A DNA stretch of 63,181 bases, counting the filler, from Reticulomyxa filosa (Eukaryota > Protista > Foraminifera): the NCBI GenBank assembly GCA_000512085.1. It is 23 parts of 23 records of this genome, joined end to end, with 100 filler letters (N's around TTAATTAATTAA, not from the genome) between each part and the next. Parts side by side here need not be neighbours in the genome. Positions count along the whole stretch, not along the records: positions 39,802 to 41,008 come from ASPP01006209.1; 22 more parts are not named here. One strand, 5' to 3'. Both the position numbers and the translations under genes were made by a program. The notes below the pieces were generated by a model. That model saw nothing but the letters and a program-made list of their open reading frames with translations. It searched no databases and was not told where the DNA came from. This document shows positions 2,455 to 41,008 of the stretch, in pieces; the stretch's first letter is position 1; every line of letters starts with the position of its first letter.

Positions 2455-3514
2455 CTACTTTAAAACAACTATAGGCAATATCGTTTCAAATATTAAATAT
2501 ATTGTTATTGACCGTTCATCTTTGTCAAATTTAGTATATGCTTTCCAAGGTGTAGTCTTGCCATCAATGTTTCTGTCGACTTTCAGTTCTGCGCCATGTC
2601 TTCCAAACGTTGGAATGTTTTTCAACATCATCATCTCGCTTACTATTATTATTATTATTATTATTTCTATCTTGGACTTTCTTGGATCTGTTGTTTCAAA
2701 TTTTGTGTGTTGTTTTTTTCGTGATTGTCCTCTTGCGATGACTTTGGCCTGATTGAATCTCACCCAAATGCAATGCGATATCGTCATGATCCAAGGCCAG
2801 TTTGAGCAGTTTGTGATGGCAATTGACATGTATATTGTCAGGATCAATATTGGCGATTTGCAAAAGGATATTTTTGTGGTGTTGCCATAGTGTGTGAGGC
2901 TCATATCAAACTTGACTCGAAACTTGGCAATTTCAACCAATCTAACCAAGTCGAAATCAATACAATAGACTAGATCAACATTCTCACTTACACTAATTAA
3001 TGAATTTTCCTGCTTCATGCAAGCGCACATTCAACACCAACAAATTGCCAGACTATTCGTCTTCATTATGTTCCAAATATAGTATGAAGTGTGGTTGATC
3101 TCTTTTTTTTTTACAAGTAGCAATGTCACTGAACTACCCACTCACCAGCCATTTCTGTTTTTGGCTCGAACGCGAATGTCGAACAAAACCGCACAAATGA
3201 ACGTATTTGTTGACAATGTGTTTACACTTTCGAACTGCATCATCTTGTTCGCTGCTATCGAACGTGGTTTTTTCGTGAAGACTTTTCGTCTTGTCTTTAT
3301 TTTGGCTTTTGTCATTTCCCCATTCTTGTCTTTGTTGTGATACTCGCAGTGGCTGCTTTTGTTGTAAATCGCGAGAGGACAGCATGAACACGCTGTTAGT
3401 AGAAGACGCGTTGCGCTTGAGAAACACATGTGCAGTGCGATCATTAACATACTGAGACGGTCCAGGACATGATGGTGAAACAATTTTGAAAAAAGATAGT
3501 GAACAATTTTCCAT
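2455..3514 (-). pseudogene. Decayed or unrecognised protein-coding gene
   Basis: Coding-like ORF pieces (3134-3550, 2455-3030) with plausible protein text switching between frames; no recognisable domain. Confidence 0.3.
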
Positions 3515-4078
3515 TGAAAAAATTGAAAATTCAAAAAAAAAGTGACTCACGAGATTTTATATCAGGTAACCGGACAAGGCCGGGTGAGGGTAGCAAGGAT
3601 GAGACCGAGCTGGAGCACTGGTTGGGAATGACCTCACTTTGGCAGACACATAAATTTTTTTATCAAAAAATATCAATTTGCCGATTTTTATTTTTCCATC
3701 AGATAAAAATTTTGTGCTAGCTTCATTTTGTCAAAGAAAAACTCGGATTATTGCATAGCCATTTTTATTTTATTTTTGTGTAAAAACTGAGCATTGTCAA
3801 ATCTTAGAAGTGAAATCTGCCTTTGCAATTTTGTGGAAAACAAATTTCGCTATACATTGATAACGTAAAAAAACTCAGTACAAGCAAAAAGATCAAAATT
3901 TGATTGATTTACAGTCATCGATTTTTTGAAAACTGTAAACACAACCAAAGCAATCAATTGACTTTGTTGCGTCTTGTCAAAAAAAATCCATCTAACCATG
4001 TTTGACCTGGATGGTATCTACAGCCCTCGATTGGGGATTAATTTTGGTGAGGAATTGTTCGGGGATTGGAATTTCAAC

Positions 4079-4229: not shown

Positions 4230-4499
4230 GAATGGCCTCGTGCGGAATGGGAGCAGGCACCGTGTTTGCTGCGCCAGCTATCGACCGCCTCATAACCAAA
4301 TGCTTTCGAGCCCCACAAACACTCGACCCGCAATTGTACGGCAACATTACCATGGACGACAAAGGACAGCACTTTATCAATGGCTCCCAACAAGTTGTCC
4401 AATTGCAACCTGGAGACTTGTTAACTAGCGGTTTCAGTGACACTATTGTCCAATCGTTACAAGAAGGCCAATGGTATTTAAGTGGAACTGGTACGCTAC

Positions 4500-4531
<32 letters not shown>

Positions 4532-5858
4532 TTATTATTATGTATTATTATGTACATATACATAATACATATGTATATAGTTGCATATATTGTACTGAAT
4601 AATTAACATTAAAAAAAAGAGGTCTAACCTTCCTTGCACAAATAAACACTGAGTTTACAAAGTCGTAAATTACAATCCACAAATGAATGAACACAAATCA
4701 AAACAAAGGACAAACGGGCGCGTCCACGGCCATATTTTCTTTAGGTATCACTTATTTGTTAACGATTGGCTGCGCCTCGATATTTAGTAAAGTACCTCAT
4801 CCGCAATGGAAACCATCAGAGGATTCGTCTTCCAAAACTAGTACTGGTCAGTTTGGCCGATAATTTAATATACATGATAACATTTGTTTGGTGTATTTGT
4901 GGTAATATATATATACATATATATATATATATGTATGTATATGTATTATGCATGTATATGTACCATATGCATATGTGCATATATGTTTGTGCTTAAAACA
5001 GACCAAAAACAGCCAAAAGTGATATTGCCATCCCTGACAGTGGAGGAAACTCTTCGAACACCTCACTTTTGGCTGATGTGGGTCGCATTTTTCAGTGGGT
5101 CTACGGCCGGTATGGGTGTGATATCTACTGCCAAAACAATGATGAGCCAATCGTTTGGACCCTTGCTTCCCAATGTGGTCACGGCCGGGTTTGCAATGAC
5201 GTATGTGATGGCCATTTCTGCCGCTAACCTTACCGGAAGATTCGGATGGGGAGCAATCTCAGATAAGATTGGACAATTTGCGACGTTCACTATCTTTGGT
5301 TCGATGGGATGTGCTTTGTATATCAGCTTGCCTTATTGCGTGGAATGGATGGCTGCAAATCCGTCTGTTTTGCCTTTGGCCATGTTTTATGGGTCTTCTT
5401 TGTTGTTAATTAGTTTCTTTGGTGGAAATTTCTCGGCTATGCCGGCATATGAATCCAATTTGTTTGGAAGACAAAACGTCGGCGCTATTCATGGACGTAT
5501 GATGACTGCTTGCGCATTGTCGGGATTGGCAGGGCCCAGAATTGTCACATACTTCAACCAGCGAAAAGAACAACAGTCCATTCGTGAATTAGCACAAACC
5601 ATTGACTCAAATACTTTCGTTGAACATTTTGGTTCGCCAATCCAAGACATTGACAAATTGATCCAAACCAAAACTGTCACTATCAATAAACTGTTGAACA
5701 TTATTCCTCCTGATGCCCATGCCATTGATCCCACGCCTTTCTTGTATAATGACACTTTGTATGTCATGAGCATTATGATGGCTTCTTGTGCTGCTGCTAA
5801 TTTTGGCGTCCGATTTTTGGGAATGCCCAAAAAAAGACTACAAAAACCAATTGTTTGA
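4230..5858 (+). CDS. MFS transporter, oxalate/formate antiporter (OFA)-like; 5' partial, spliced (exons 4230-4490, 4709-4846, 5002-5858)
   Basis: In-phase GT-AG introns; motifs GMASCGMGAG, LRTPHFW, NLTGRFGWGAISDKIG, FGGNFSAMPAY..LFG..NVGAIHG; multiple TM helices. Confidence 0.88.
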
Positions 5859-39801: not shown

Positions 39802-40263
39802 CCAGCCGATGCGCTTGGCCGGCGTACCCACCATCAGCGCGTAGGGCTTCACGTCCTTGGTGACCACGGCGCCGGCGCCGATGAAGGCGTACTCGCCGAT
39901 GGTGTGGCCGCACACCACGGTGGCGTTGGCACCGATAGTGGCACCGCGCTTCACGATAGTGCGGCGGTATTCGTTCTTGCGGCTAACGTGGCTGCGCGGG
40001 TTGTTGACGTTGGTGAACACCATCGACGGGCCGCAGAACACGTCGTCTTCCAGCGTCACCGCGTCGTAGATGGACACGTTGTTCTGCACCTTCACGTTGT
40101 CGCCGATGATGACATCGTTGCCGACAAACACGTTCTGGCCAAAGGAGCAGCGGGCGCCAATGCGCGCCTGGCCGCAGATGTGTACCCAGTGCCAGACGCG
40201 GGTGTCAGCGCCGATTTGCGCACCGTCATCGACGATGGCGGTGGGGTGAACGGTGTAGCTCAT
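39802..40263 (-). CDS. wbpD: Bacterial UDP-2-acetamido-3-amino-2,3-dideoxy-glucuronate N-acetyltransferase (WlbB/WbpD), 3' truncated
   Basis: [18 protein letters not shown], hexapeptide repeats, [24 protein letters not shown]; GC-rich. Confidence 0.9.
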
Positions 40264-40283
40264 TGTTTTGCCTTTTTTCTTTC

Positions 40284-40311
40284 GCCACGAAAACCACAAA
40301 AACCACAAAAA
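40284..40311. repeat. Left arm of inverted repeat (3 x 9-bp CCACRAAAA units)
   Basis: GCCACGAAAACCACAAAAACCACAAAAA; inverted partner at 40744-40771. Confidence 0.85.
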
Positions 40312-40381
40312 AATAAACGCGCAGCCATGACGGGCACTATGTCAGATAGCCGTCCAGAGCAGGTAGGCGTAGCCGCGCGGT

Positions 40382-40743
40382 TTATAGCACCAAACGCACA
40401 ATATCCGCCTTGGGATAGCTAAAGTTTACTAGCAGCCCAACCCGGATACCGGTTGCCCTCAGGTAGTTCAATACCTGGGCTTTATGCGCTGGGGTCAGTT
40501 TCTCCTGCGCTTTTAGCTCCAGCAGAACACGCCCCTCCACGATGATGTCAGCCACATAATCGCCAACCACCTCGCCTTTGTACCGCACCGCTACCGGGCA
40601 TTGTGCATCTGCACTCAAGCCTTGACGCACCAACTCCAGCAACAACGCCCGCTCGTACACTTTCTCCAGAAAACCGTGCCCCAACTCACGATAGACTTCG
40701 AACACACAGCCTTGGATGCGATAGCAAAGCTCTTTTCCAGCAT
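40382..40743 (-). CDS. GxxExxY protein (PD-(D/E)XK nuclease superfamily); one-base frameshift near the start
   Basis: LGHGFLEKVYERAL, ADIIVEG.VLLELKA, QVLNYL..TG..VGLLVNF. The ATG at 40743 reads MLEKELCYRIQG only if one A is added to the A4 run. Confidence 0.9.
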
Positions 40744-40771
40744 GTTCGTGTTCTTTCGTGGTTTTCGTGGC
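40744..40771. repeat. Right arm of inverted repeat
   Basis: Reverse complement GCCACGAAAACCACGAAAGAACACGAAC; its first 14 nt are identical to the left arm. Confidence 0.85.
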
Positions 40772-40781
40772 TAATACAACA

Positions 40782-41008
40782 TCAGTACTCCAGCGGCAGG
40801 TTCACGCGCTGGCCGTCGCGGGCGGAGCGGTAGATGCCTACCAGCAGCTCCAGCGACTTCAGGCCTTCGCGGCCGTCTGTTTCCGGCTCGGCTTCGCCGC
40901 GCATCACGCGGATCACATTGTCGTAGTACAGCGGGTGGCCAAAGCCGTACACACTGGTGGTGGCGTAACTGACGTTCTTGATCTCGTCGTCCATCGTGTG
41001 CGGCTCGG
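40782..41008 (-). CDS. wlbA: C-terminus of a Gfo/Idh/MocA oxidoreductase (WlbA-like UDP-GlcNAcA 3-dehydrogenase)
   Basis: SYATTSVYGFGHPLYYDNVI..MRGEAEPETDGREGLKSLELL..IYRSARDG.RV.LPLEY*; upstream of wbpD. Confidence 0.8.

Follow-up and report, generated by a model that had tools for sequence, protein, structure and literature searches.

A frameshifted GxxExxY gene between inverted tandem-repeat arms: a probable copy of a widespread nuclease-repeat DNA cassette

In this study, we describe a 488-bp segment (40284-40771) of the analysed window, a stretch of 63,181 nucleotides made up of 23 joined parts of the Reticulomyxa filosa assembly GCA_000512085.1. On balance, the segment is probably a copy, inactivated through the loss of 1 nt, of a compact DNA cassette that is widespread and in which a nuclease gene of the GxxExxY family and two repeat arms are partners at the DNA level. 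Comparison of loci shows that GxxExxY genes and such arms are associated throughout the family, that gene and arms have been acquired, lost and exchanged jointly at a fixed site, and that the cassette is foreign in composition with respect to its surroundings.

All three genes of the corresponding window piece (39802-41008) lie on the minus strand. On one side is the 3' end of an oxidoreductase gene of the GFO/IDH/MocA type, wlbA/wbpB-like (40782-41008; PF02894, 3.8e-9), which is truncated at the edge of the piece and ends with a TGA codon at 40782-40784; full-length orthologues of 352 aa with the same neighbours are present in L083, L085 and L086. On the other side is the 5' part of a wbpD/wlbB-like gene for a hexapeptide-repeat N-acetyltransferase (39802-40263; PF00132, 5.6e-19), with its ATG at 40263-40261 and also truncated at the piece edge. 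Its close homologues are annotated as UDP-2-acetamido-3-amino-2,3-dideoxy-glucuronate N-acetyltransferase, that is, WbpD/WlbB. Reading along the coding strand, an outer left flank of 10 nt (40772-40781), which ends in TTA, leads into the 5' arm (40771 to 40744), formed by the three tandem 9-nt units GCCACGAAA, ACCACGAAA and GAACACGAA. The inner end of this arm abuts an ATG (40743-40741), which together with a run of four A (40736-40733) constitutes a frameshift site (40733-40743) having one A fewer than its relatives. The frame of the GxxExxY/PDDEXK_3 domain (40382-40732) covers model positions 1-116, contains the catalytic E, D and E-x-K in its translation and is closed by TAA at 40384-40382. 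A spacer of 68 nt (40314-40381), also found in L081 and L082 and missing in C. vaccinii, separates this stop codon from the 3' arm (40313 to 40284), in which the units are inverted and read GCCACGAAAA, CCACAAAAA and CCACAAAAAAA on the plus strand. The outer right flank of 20 nt (40264-40283) includes the ribosome-binding region of the downstream gene, and this stretch is missing at empty sites. The earlier note had placed the arms 10 nt from one stop codon and 20 nt from the next ATG, which was confirmed in both sequence and coordinates. In addition, the sequence at 40766-40774, like the arm termini in general, has the form TTA-GCCAC-A/G, which would be one base off the DnaA-box consensus (TTATCCACA).

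The first 14 nt of the arms pair perfectly, as had been claimed, and RNA folding of the minus-strand transcript reproduced the proposed stem, with 19 contiguous pairs, a small internal loop and 6 further pairs that close the cassette (z -3.1). In the plus-strand transcript just 14 Watson-Crick pairs are kept (z -2.0). The stem score of the window is 30, against a median of 15 and a 99th percentile of 23 in displaced controls from related loci (n = 251). These controls, together with the family-wide recurrence of the arms, rule out a chance inverted repeat; an integron cassette is also ruled out, since there is no integrase and arms stand on both sides. Neither a sigma-70 promoter nor an intrinsic terminator was found in the window piece. 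The reported lack of a transposase within the cassette and of a target-site duplication was borne out at this site, where the alignment of filled and empty junctions revealed no direct duplication; an excision junction was likewise not found. An Rfam search with the window piece and ten arm loci returned sub-threshold generic miRNA-hairpin models only.

The window ORF matched TIGR04256 (GxxExxY) over model positions 1-116 with 139.9 bits (4e-41; cut-off 35), and covered the whole PF13366 model (PDDEXK_3) with 139.2 bits (1e-40; cut-off 22). Residues E27, D66, E76 and K78 were invariant in 60 relatives and are also present in the window translation. The AlphaFold (AF2) model had a pLDDT of 94.7, and the nearest solved folds retrieved by Foldseek were Cas4 SSO0001 (E 2e-4, TM 0.63), lambda exonuclease, LHK-Exo, MGME1 and the archaeal Holliday-junction resolvase Hjc; for Cas4, lambda exonuclease and Hjc, TM-scores ranged between 0.45 and 0.63 and sequence identities were 13-24%. 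The substrates of such fold relatives are DNA ends, single strands and branched DNA. On the basis of the model, GxxExxY is probably a minimal, active PD-(D/E)XK nuclease. It shares with Cas4, lambda exonuclease and Hjc the PD-(D/E)XK core with E...D...ExK, and Hjc, which cleaves branched DNA, is of the same size; however, GxxExxY has neither the Fe-S cluster module nor the toroid-forming parts, and the likeness to these enzymes is one of fold only. A sequence search of the PDB gave no relative of the protein, PHROGs gave no match, PADLOC gave only a weak Cas4 match, and a low-sensitivity scan of viral contigs with two peptide patterns detected no GxxExxY relative. In a word-index search, 1612 close relatives were scored. 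PF13366 has been listed as a family of unknown function with multiple transfers (Steczkiewicz 2012). Between close GxxExxY copies dN/dS was 0.16, which shows the signature of purifying selection while the gene is intact.

The presence of the nuclease gene in this segment was confirmed with one correction: the GxxExxY domain is there, but this copy is frameshifted, which had been missed. In the DNA alignment, the window has four A at 40733-40736 and L081 and L082 (95-97% identical) have five. With one A missing, translation from the ATG at 40743 leaves the domain frame after codon 3. The frame of the domain has no ATG, GTG or TTG upstream of model position 1 and is open back into the oxidoreductase gene, and the window copy has no intact reading frame from a start codon. 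Relatives that are 83-97% identical encode 120 aa with the N-terminus MLEKELCYRIQG. To judge from the alignment, the frameshift could be either a real mutation or a homopolymer sequencing error. Another relative, L218 (805-820), has TAG in place of GAG at codon 5. Taken together, the deletion in the window and this stop codon suggest that copies of the window lineage are being inactivated independently, with sequencing error possible for the window, and that the gene is dispensable where it is located. For such copies, gene callers give a 107-aa product that starts at an internal GTG (P0008, P0012 and P0015).

The association of the gene with arms was evaluated in at least 80 GxxExxY loci from a genome scan (46-66% identity), and Chromobacterium loci were obtained by protein look-ups. 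The listed loci belong to Desulfobacterota, Gamma- and Betaproteobacteria, Acidobacteriota, Planctomycetota, Nitrospinota, Chloroflexota, Bacteroidota and one Methanosarcinales archaeon. When long flanks were compared by raw RNA duplex energy, displaced controls scored as low as the real loci; a stem score was used instead, based on a stringent local stem alignment of the 110 nt before the start with the 200 nt after the stop. Its median was 28 versus 15 in displaced controls, and 80% of the 80 listed loci exceeded the 95th percentile of the controls, so that the predicted GxxExxY homologues with flanking inverted short-unit repeats were indeed found across phyla. About 20% of the genes in these 80 loci were without clear arms. 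An arm consists of 2-4 tandem units with the core CRCNRA (CACGAA, CACGGA, CACAGA, CGCAGA and others), spaced by 10 nt in 116 cases and by 9 nt in 35. The outermost unit, RCCRC, is preceded by TTA, with a conservation of 67-80% per position in 92 arm ends. Arm polarity was fixed in 50 of 61 loci, and in 16 of the 61 the inner end of the 5' arm touched or included the ATG; the median distances were 21 nt between arm and start codon and 13 nt between stop codon and arm. In 45 of 64 loci both neighbours were transcribed in the same direction as the gene, the median gaps being 80-90 nt. Given this orientation, and that no promoter- or terminator-like site occurs in the window piece, the gene looks operon-embedded and transcribed by read-through.

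Several loci depart from the simple arrangement. At L027 (1767-1770) and several other loci the arm often begins a few bases from the upstream stop codon, or includes that codon as the TAG within TTAGCC, and the element fills the entire intergenic gap. L035 has an amplified arm array, in which a complete arm of 29 nt is repeated in tandem about 12 times, at a spacing of about 42 nt, upstream of the GxxExxY gene (3455-3954) and about 7 times, inverted, downstream of it (4360-4722). Two Planctomycetota loci, L062 (3916-4882) and L079 (3918-5078), hold two-gene cassettes in which GxxExxY is followed by a second ORF (146 and 227 aa, respectively, with no Pfam match) and a single outer pair of arms encloses both; in L079 a further arm separates the two genes. 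In the Methanosarcinales archaeon MAG, a GxxExxY gene with arms of the CGCAGATGAA type in reversed arrangement (L078, 638-1036) lies beside a gene-less pair (1087-1629), and the system reaches archaea if the binning is right. Inverted pairs of other tandem units with a period of 7-9 nt were also seen (L005 1029-2092, L014 5866-7181, L032 333-689, L074 6651-6764 and L009 5536-6858), two of which bracket small toxin-type genes (L005, DUF5615/PIN-like; L014, an MNT-HepT fusion). The design of a gene between tandem-unit arms may not be limited to GxxExxY.

The type of unit follows the protein phylogeny. On a tree of 80 proteins the dominant unit type changed 22 times, compared with a mean of 38.5 and a minimum of 33 in 300 shuffles, a test that is inflated by shared ancestry; the tree itself is short (128 columns) and many of its forks are open. 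In one well-supported clade (SH-aLRT 98), CACGAA was found in 13 of 14 rows, although its members span Acidobacteriota, Planctomycetota, Betaproteobacteria, Omnitrophota and Actinomycetota. Paralogues of the same genome carry different units, CGCAGA and CACGGA in L072 and CACAGA and CGCAGA in L075. As a pattern in sequences, this match would fit recognition of the units by the protein, and would equally fit plain co-transfer of the cassette, as transfer of gene and arms together would yield it with no recognition at all.

The wlbA|wbpD junction is polymorphic. It is filled with GxxExxY in the window, L081, L082, L218, C. vaccinii (L083/L084) and other Chromobacterium genomes (L215/L216), the protein of C. 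vaccinii being 78% and that of L215/L216 63% identical to that of the window. It is empty in L086/L087, L091 and L093/L094. In L086/L087 the two genes are 1 nt apart and WbpD is 93% identical to that of L082; Crenobacter and Paludibacterium have gaps of 10 and 13 nt, respectively. The existence of these empty sites agrees with the initial description of a discrete unit, a nuclease gene plus its own repeat arms, between operon genes that normally abut. Among Chromobacterium relatives, three gene-plus-arm variants occupy the junction, with proteins 60-76% identical and pS values of 0.76-0.84, which under NG86 are saturated for the cassette, whereas their flanks are 81-94% identical (pS 0.33-0.44). 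For instance, L083 and L215 share flanks that are 94% and 88% identical (pS 0.33) versus 62% for GxxExxY (pS 0.84), and their arm units differ (CACGAAA/CACTAAA versus CACGGAA, respectively); between L082 and L083 the flank pS is 0.34-0.41 and that of the cassette 0.78. The flanks of L215 and of C. alkanivorans (L090) are 98% and 95% identical (pS 0.14-0.19), and the 34-nt gap of the latter consists of the left flank, an arm stub of about 9 nt and the right flank CTAAAGGTTT common to L083 and L215. From its composition, we read this gap as a probable deletion scar. Furthermore, GC3 was 0.51-0.64 in the cassette versus 0.82-0.93 in the flanks. The polymorphic junction and this foreign composition together show a foreign DNA unit, whose gene and arms are acquired, lost and replaced jointly. 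Since the cassette persists at one site across the genus, movement, if any, is rare. Other inserts without arms occur at the same junction, a low-GC ORF of 238 aa with no Pfam or PADLOC match in L085 (1788-2504) and a DUF4337 gene in L088/L089 (L088, 1944-2480), and in this O-antigen-type operon the junction seems to be a hotspot for small inserts.

The same arms are far more frequent without the gene. Within the 8-kb loci, gene-less short-loop arm pairs were found in neighbouring gaps (L001 1301/1372, L046 3703/3798, L068 3872/3948 and L074 4405/4467), and between accC and prmA L003 has a gene-less pair where L002 has a GxxExxY cassette. Two gene-less pairs of the window-type GGCCACGAAA occur in the same operon of L085, a contig of 3.9 Mb that encodes a WbpD with 97% identity to that of the window lineage; one pair lies before wlbA and the other between wbpD and the next gene. 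Arm-first sampling with the pattern GCCACGAAANNCACNAAMNNACAC in metagenome contigs gave at least 80 loci (476 kb examined), almost all of them gene-less hairpins of 70-110 bp. In approximately 55 of the 80 listed loci a plus/minus pair lies 44-200 nt apart, typically as a clean palindrome that measures about 75 bp and has three units in each arm. A GxxExxY gene was found in one of these 80 (L119), exactly between the arms, and in L095, L104 and L106 a second hairpin of another unit type is nested in the loop. The solo repeat pairs that had been predicted were accordingly recovered in large excess, as counted in the loci and metagenome contigs. That 80% of the genes have arms and very few arms have a gene makes their relation resemble that of RAYT and REP.

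An RNA-level role had been proposed for the stem, on the grounds that three differences between the arms are G-U wobbles on the coding strand. The wobbles are present in the window; they lie at positions common to its relatives, and represent one or two events rather than three independent ones. On such a reading, base-pairing of the arms within the operon mRNA would lead to RNase III-type cleavage that removes or processes the cassette, as in the intervening sequences of 23S rRNA. Those with an ORF (S23p of Leptospira and Coxiella) contain a small ORF between long-stem inverted repeats in a transcribed region, the S23p product being of a four-helix bundle family. Both share a small ORF bracketed by stem-forming inverted repeats; nevertheless, the cassette lies between two protein genes, has no rRNA or Rfam match and encodes a protein of a different family. 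The 19 + 6 pairs of the sense transcript in the window, compared with 14 in the antisense, and the mostly co-directional placement of cassettes with operons would suit such an element. Over 61 loci, however, selection for a single-stranded stem of the mRNA strand was contradicted, as G-U-type mismatches numbered 79 in sense and 82 in antisense (p = 0.87), with 203 arm mismatches being G-U-type on neither strand. Orthologous cassettes show uncompensated arm changes, such as AACC to ATTC in L082 and G/G and T/T in C. vaccinii, the hairpins without a gene form perfect palindromes in DNA and are equal on both strands, and a cut in the mRNA would not rejoin the flanking genes. We consider excision or processing at the RNA level very improbable; the lack of strand bias, the inherited wobbles, the uncompensated changes, the strand-equal palindromes and the absence of an Rfam match place the function at the DNA level.

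In the DNA-level partnership that we favour, a GxxExxY (PF13366) gene for about 120 aa would occupy the loop enclosed by two inverted arms, whose outer terminus is TTA-RCCRC, and would be transcribed through read-through of the host operon. GxxExxY would recognise its cognate units in DNA, either as duplex or as extruded or single-stranded hairpins, and the 9-10-nt period of the units may provide one binding site per helical turn. The arms would pair as a hairpin or cruciform, and GxxExxY would cut at the conserved termini or in the loop; by this cutting it could spread or maintain, in trans, the hairpins that lack a gene and, in cis, its own cassette, following the logic of REP/RAYT with a different enzyme class. 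Binding and cleavage of the arms by the protein, and any movement of them, are what we infer from the patterns described above. A more specific form of this reading, in which GxxExxY proteins are the dedicated enzymes of pan-prokaryotic hairpin mobile elements, cutting the TTA-RCCRC termini or loops and moving both themselves and the gene-less hairpins between operon genes, is put forward tentatively, as a possibility that we hold somewhat doubtful.

It must also be considered that the hairpins could be REP-like elements of the host, kept for reasons of their own or by another enzyme, and GxxExxY a free-standing gene of the homing type that cuts their loops and is copied in by repair but does not mobilise them. 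Enzymes of this kind exist, since I-Ssp6803I is a PD-(D/E)XK homing endonuclease. The gene is always within the loop, hairpins exceed genes by about 50 to 1 or more among the arm-first matches listed, and one site can be occupied by different variants, all of which would suit such a gene. Filled, empty and scarred alleles of the site were observed. Nested hairpins show that loops also take other hairpins; loops being favoured for insertion suits this model and the nuclease-repeat partnership alike. We regard homing, the main alternative, as rather unlikely, because a unit type that tracks the protein clade across phyla is unexpected for hairpins owned by the host, arms of about 30 bp offer marginal homology for repair-mediated copying, and the variants swapped at one site differ in arm type. 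Improbable, too, is that the units bind a host nucleoid or regulatory protein such as IHF/HU and that GxxExxY is an unrelated small gene tolerated in gaps. A period of 9-10 nt suits a protein on one face of the helix, and IHF/HU binding has been proposed for paired tandem-repeat sites between adjacent genes (Aklujkar 2009, PMC2700814). This would leave unexplained why 80% of GxxExxY genes in the listed loci, from many phyla and one archaeon, lie exactly between arms of fixed polarity, why the unit type follows the protein tree and why gene and arms are swapped jointly.

The paired sites in question were described in Geobacter metallireducens, as three classes of opposite-strand pairs, each with three to five tandem units of 7-9 nt, at variable distance between consecutive genes, in one genome only and with no gene linked to them (Aklujkar 2009, PMC2700814). 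Compared by description, the class 2 unit (TCTCCGTS[Y]) reads CACGGAGA on the opposite strand, near the CACGGA units of this study; the Geobacter pairs differ in that they enclose no gene and were not linked to GxxExxY. MITEs and their parent insertion sequences (e.g., Correia elements) resemble the present system in being short, gene-less, intergenic inverted-repeat elements, sometimes nested, with rarer coding versions. Unlike them and other TIR transposons, the cassette has no DDE or other known transposase and no target-site duplication, and its ends consist of tandem sub-repeats.

The nearest concept is REP/RAYT (REPIN; Bertels and Rainey 2011, PMC3116915; PMC5581495), and the analogy drawn in the earlier note fits well. 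In both cases the enzyme gene lies between inverted copies of a dispersed repeat, as was found here, L119 included; the same repeat is far commoner as gene-less, hairpin-forming doublets in intergenic gaps; the repeat type is matched to the enzyme lineage; and the system persists for long within a lineage. The differences are also clear. RAYT is an IS200-like HUH Y1 transposase, whereas the protein studied here is of the PD-(D/E)XK type with a match to PF13366 only and its activity is predicted. A REP repeat is short, imperfectly palindromic and headed by a conserved tetranucleotide (GTAG/CGTC), whereas the arms consist of tandem direct units of 9-10 nt that are not individually palindromic. 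Moreover, in the present system paralogues with different arm types share a genome, and there are clear horizontal exchange and foreign composition. In the literature searched, we found no publication linking GxxExxY/PF13366 to repeats, other mentions of the family being incidental. The cassette is apparently an undescribed kind of mobile DNA, best called a repeat-associated nuclease system.

With these results PF13366/TIGR04256, a large and sporadic family, is tied to a specific and recognisable DNA partner, which had probably been noticed once before and was then interpreted as sites for nucleoid proteins. If the nuclease acts on the arms, the system would be a second, independent invention of the REP/RAYT lifestyle with another catalytic fold, and the arms would offer a ready biochemical assay for the family. 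If GxxExxY proteins are the dedicated enzymes of these elements, they would add an enzyme class to those known for DNA transposition or homing, and a large family would gain a function. Regardless of how the system works, genes with otherwise coupled translation are set apart by the hairpins, which also introduce a new ribosome-binding region, and which may therefore affect operon expression, variation of the O-antigen locus, genome annotation and repeat-based typing.
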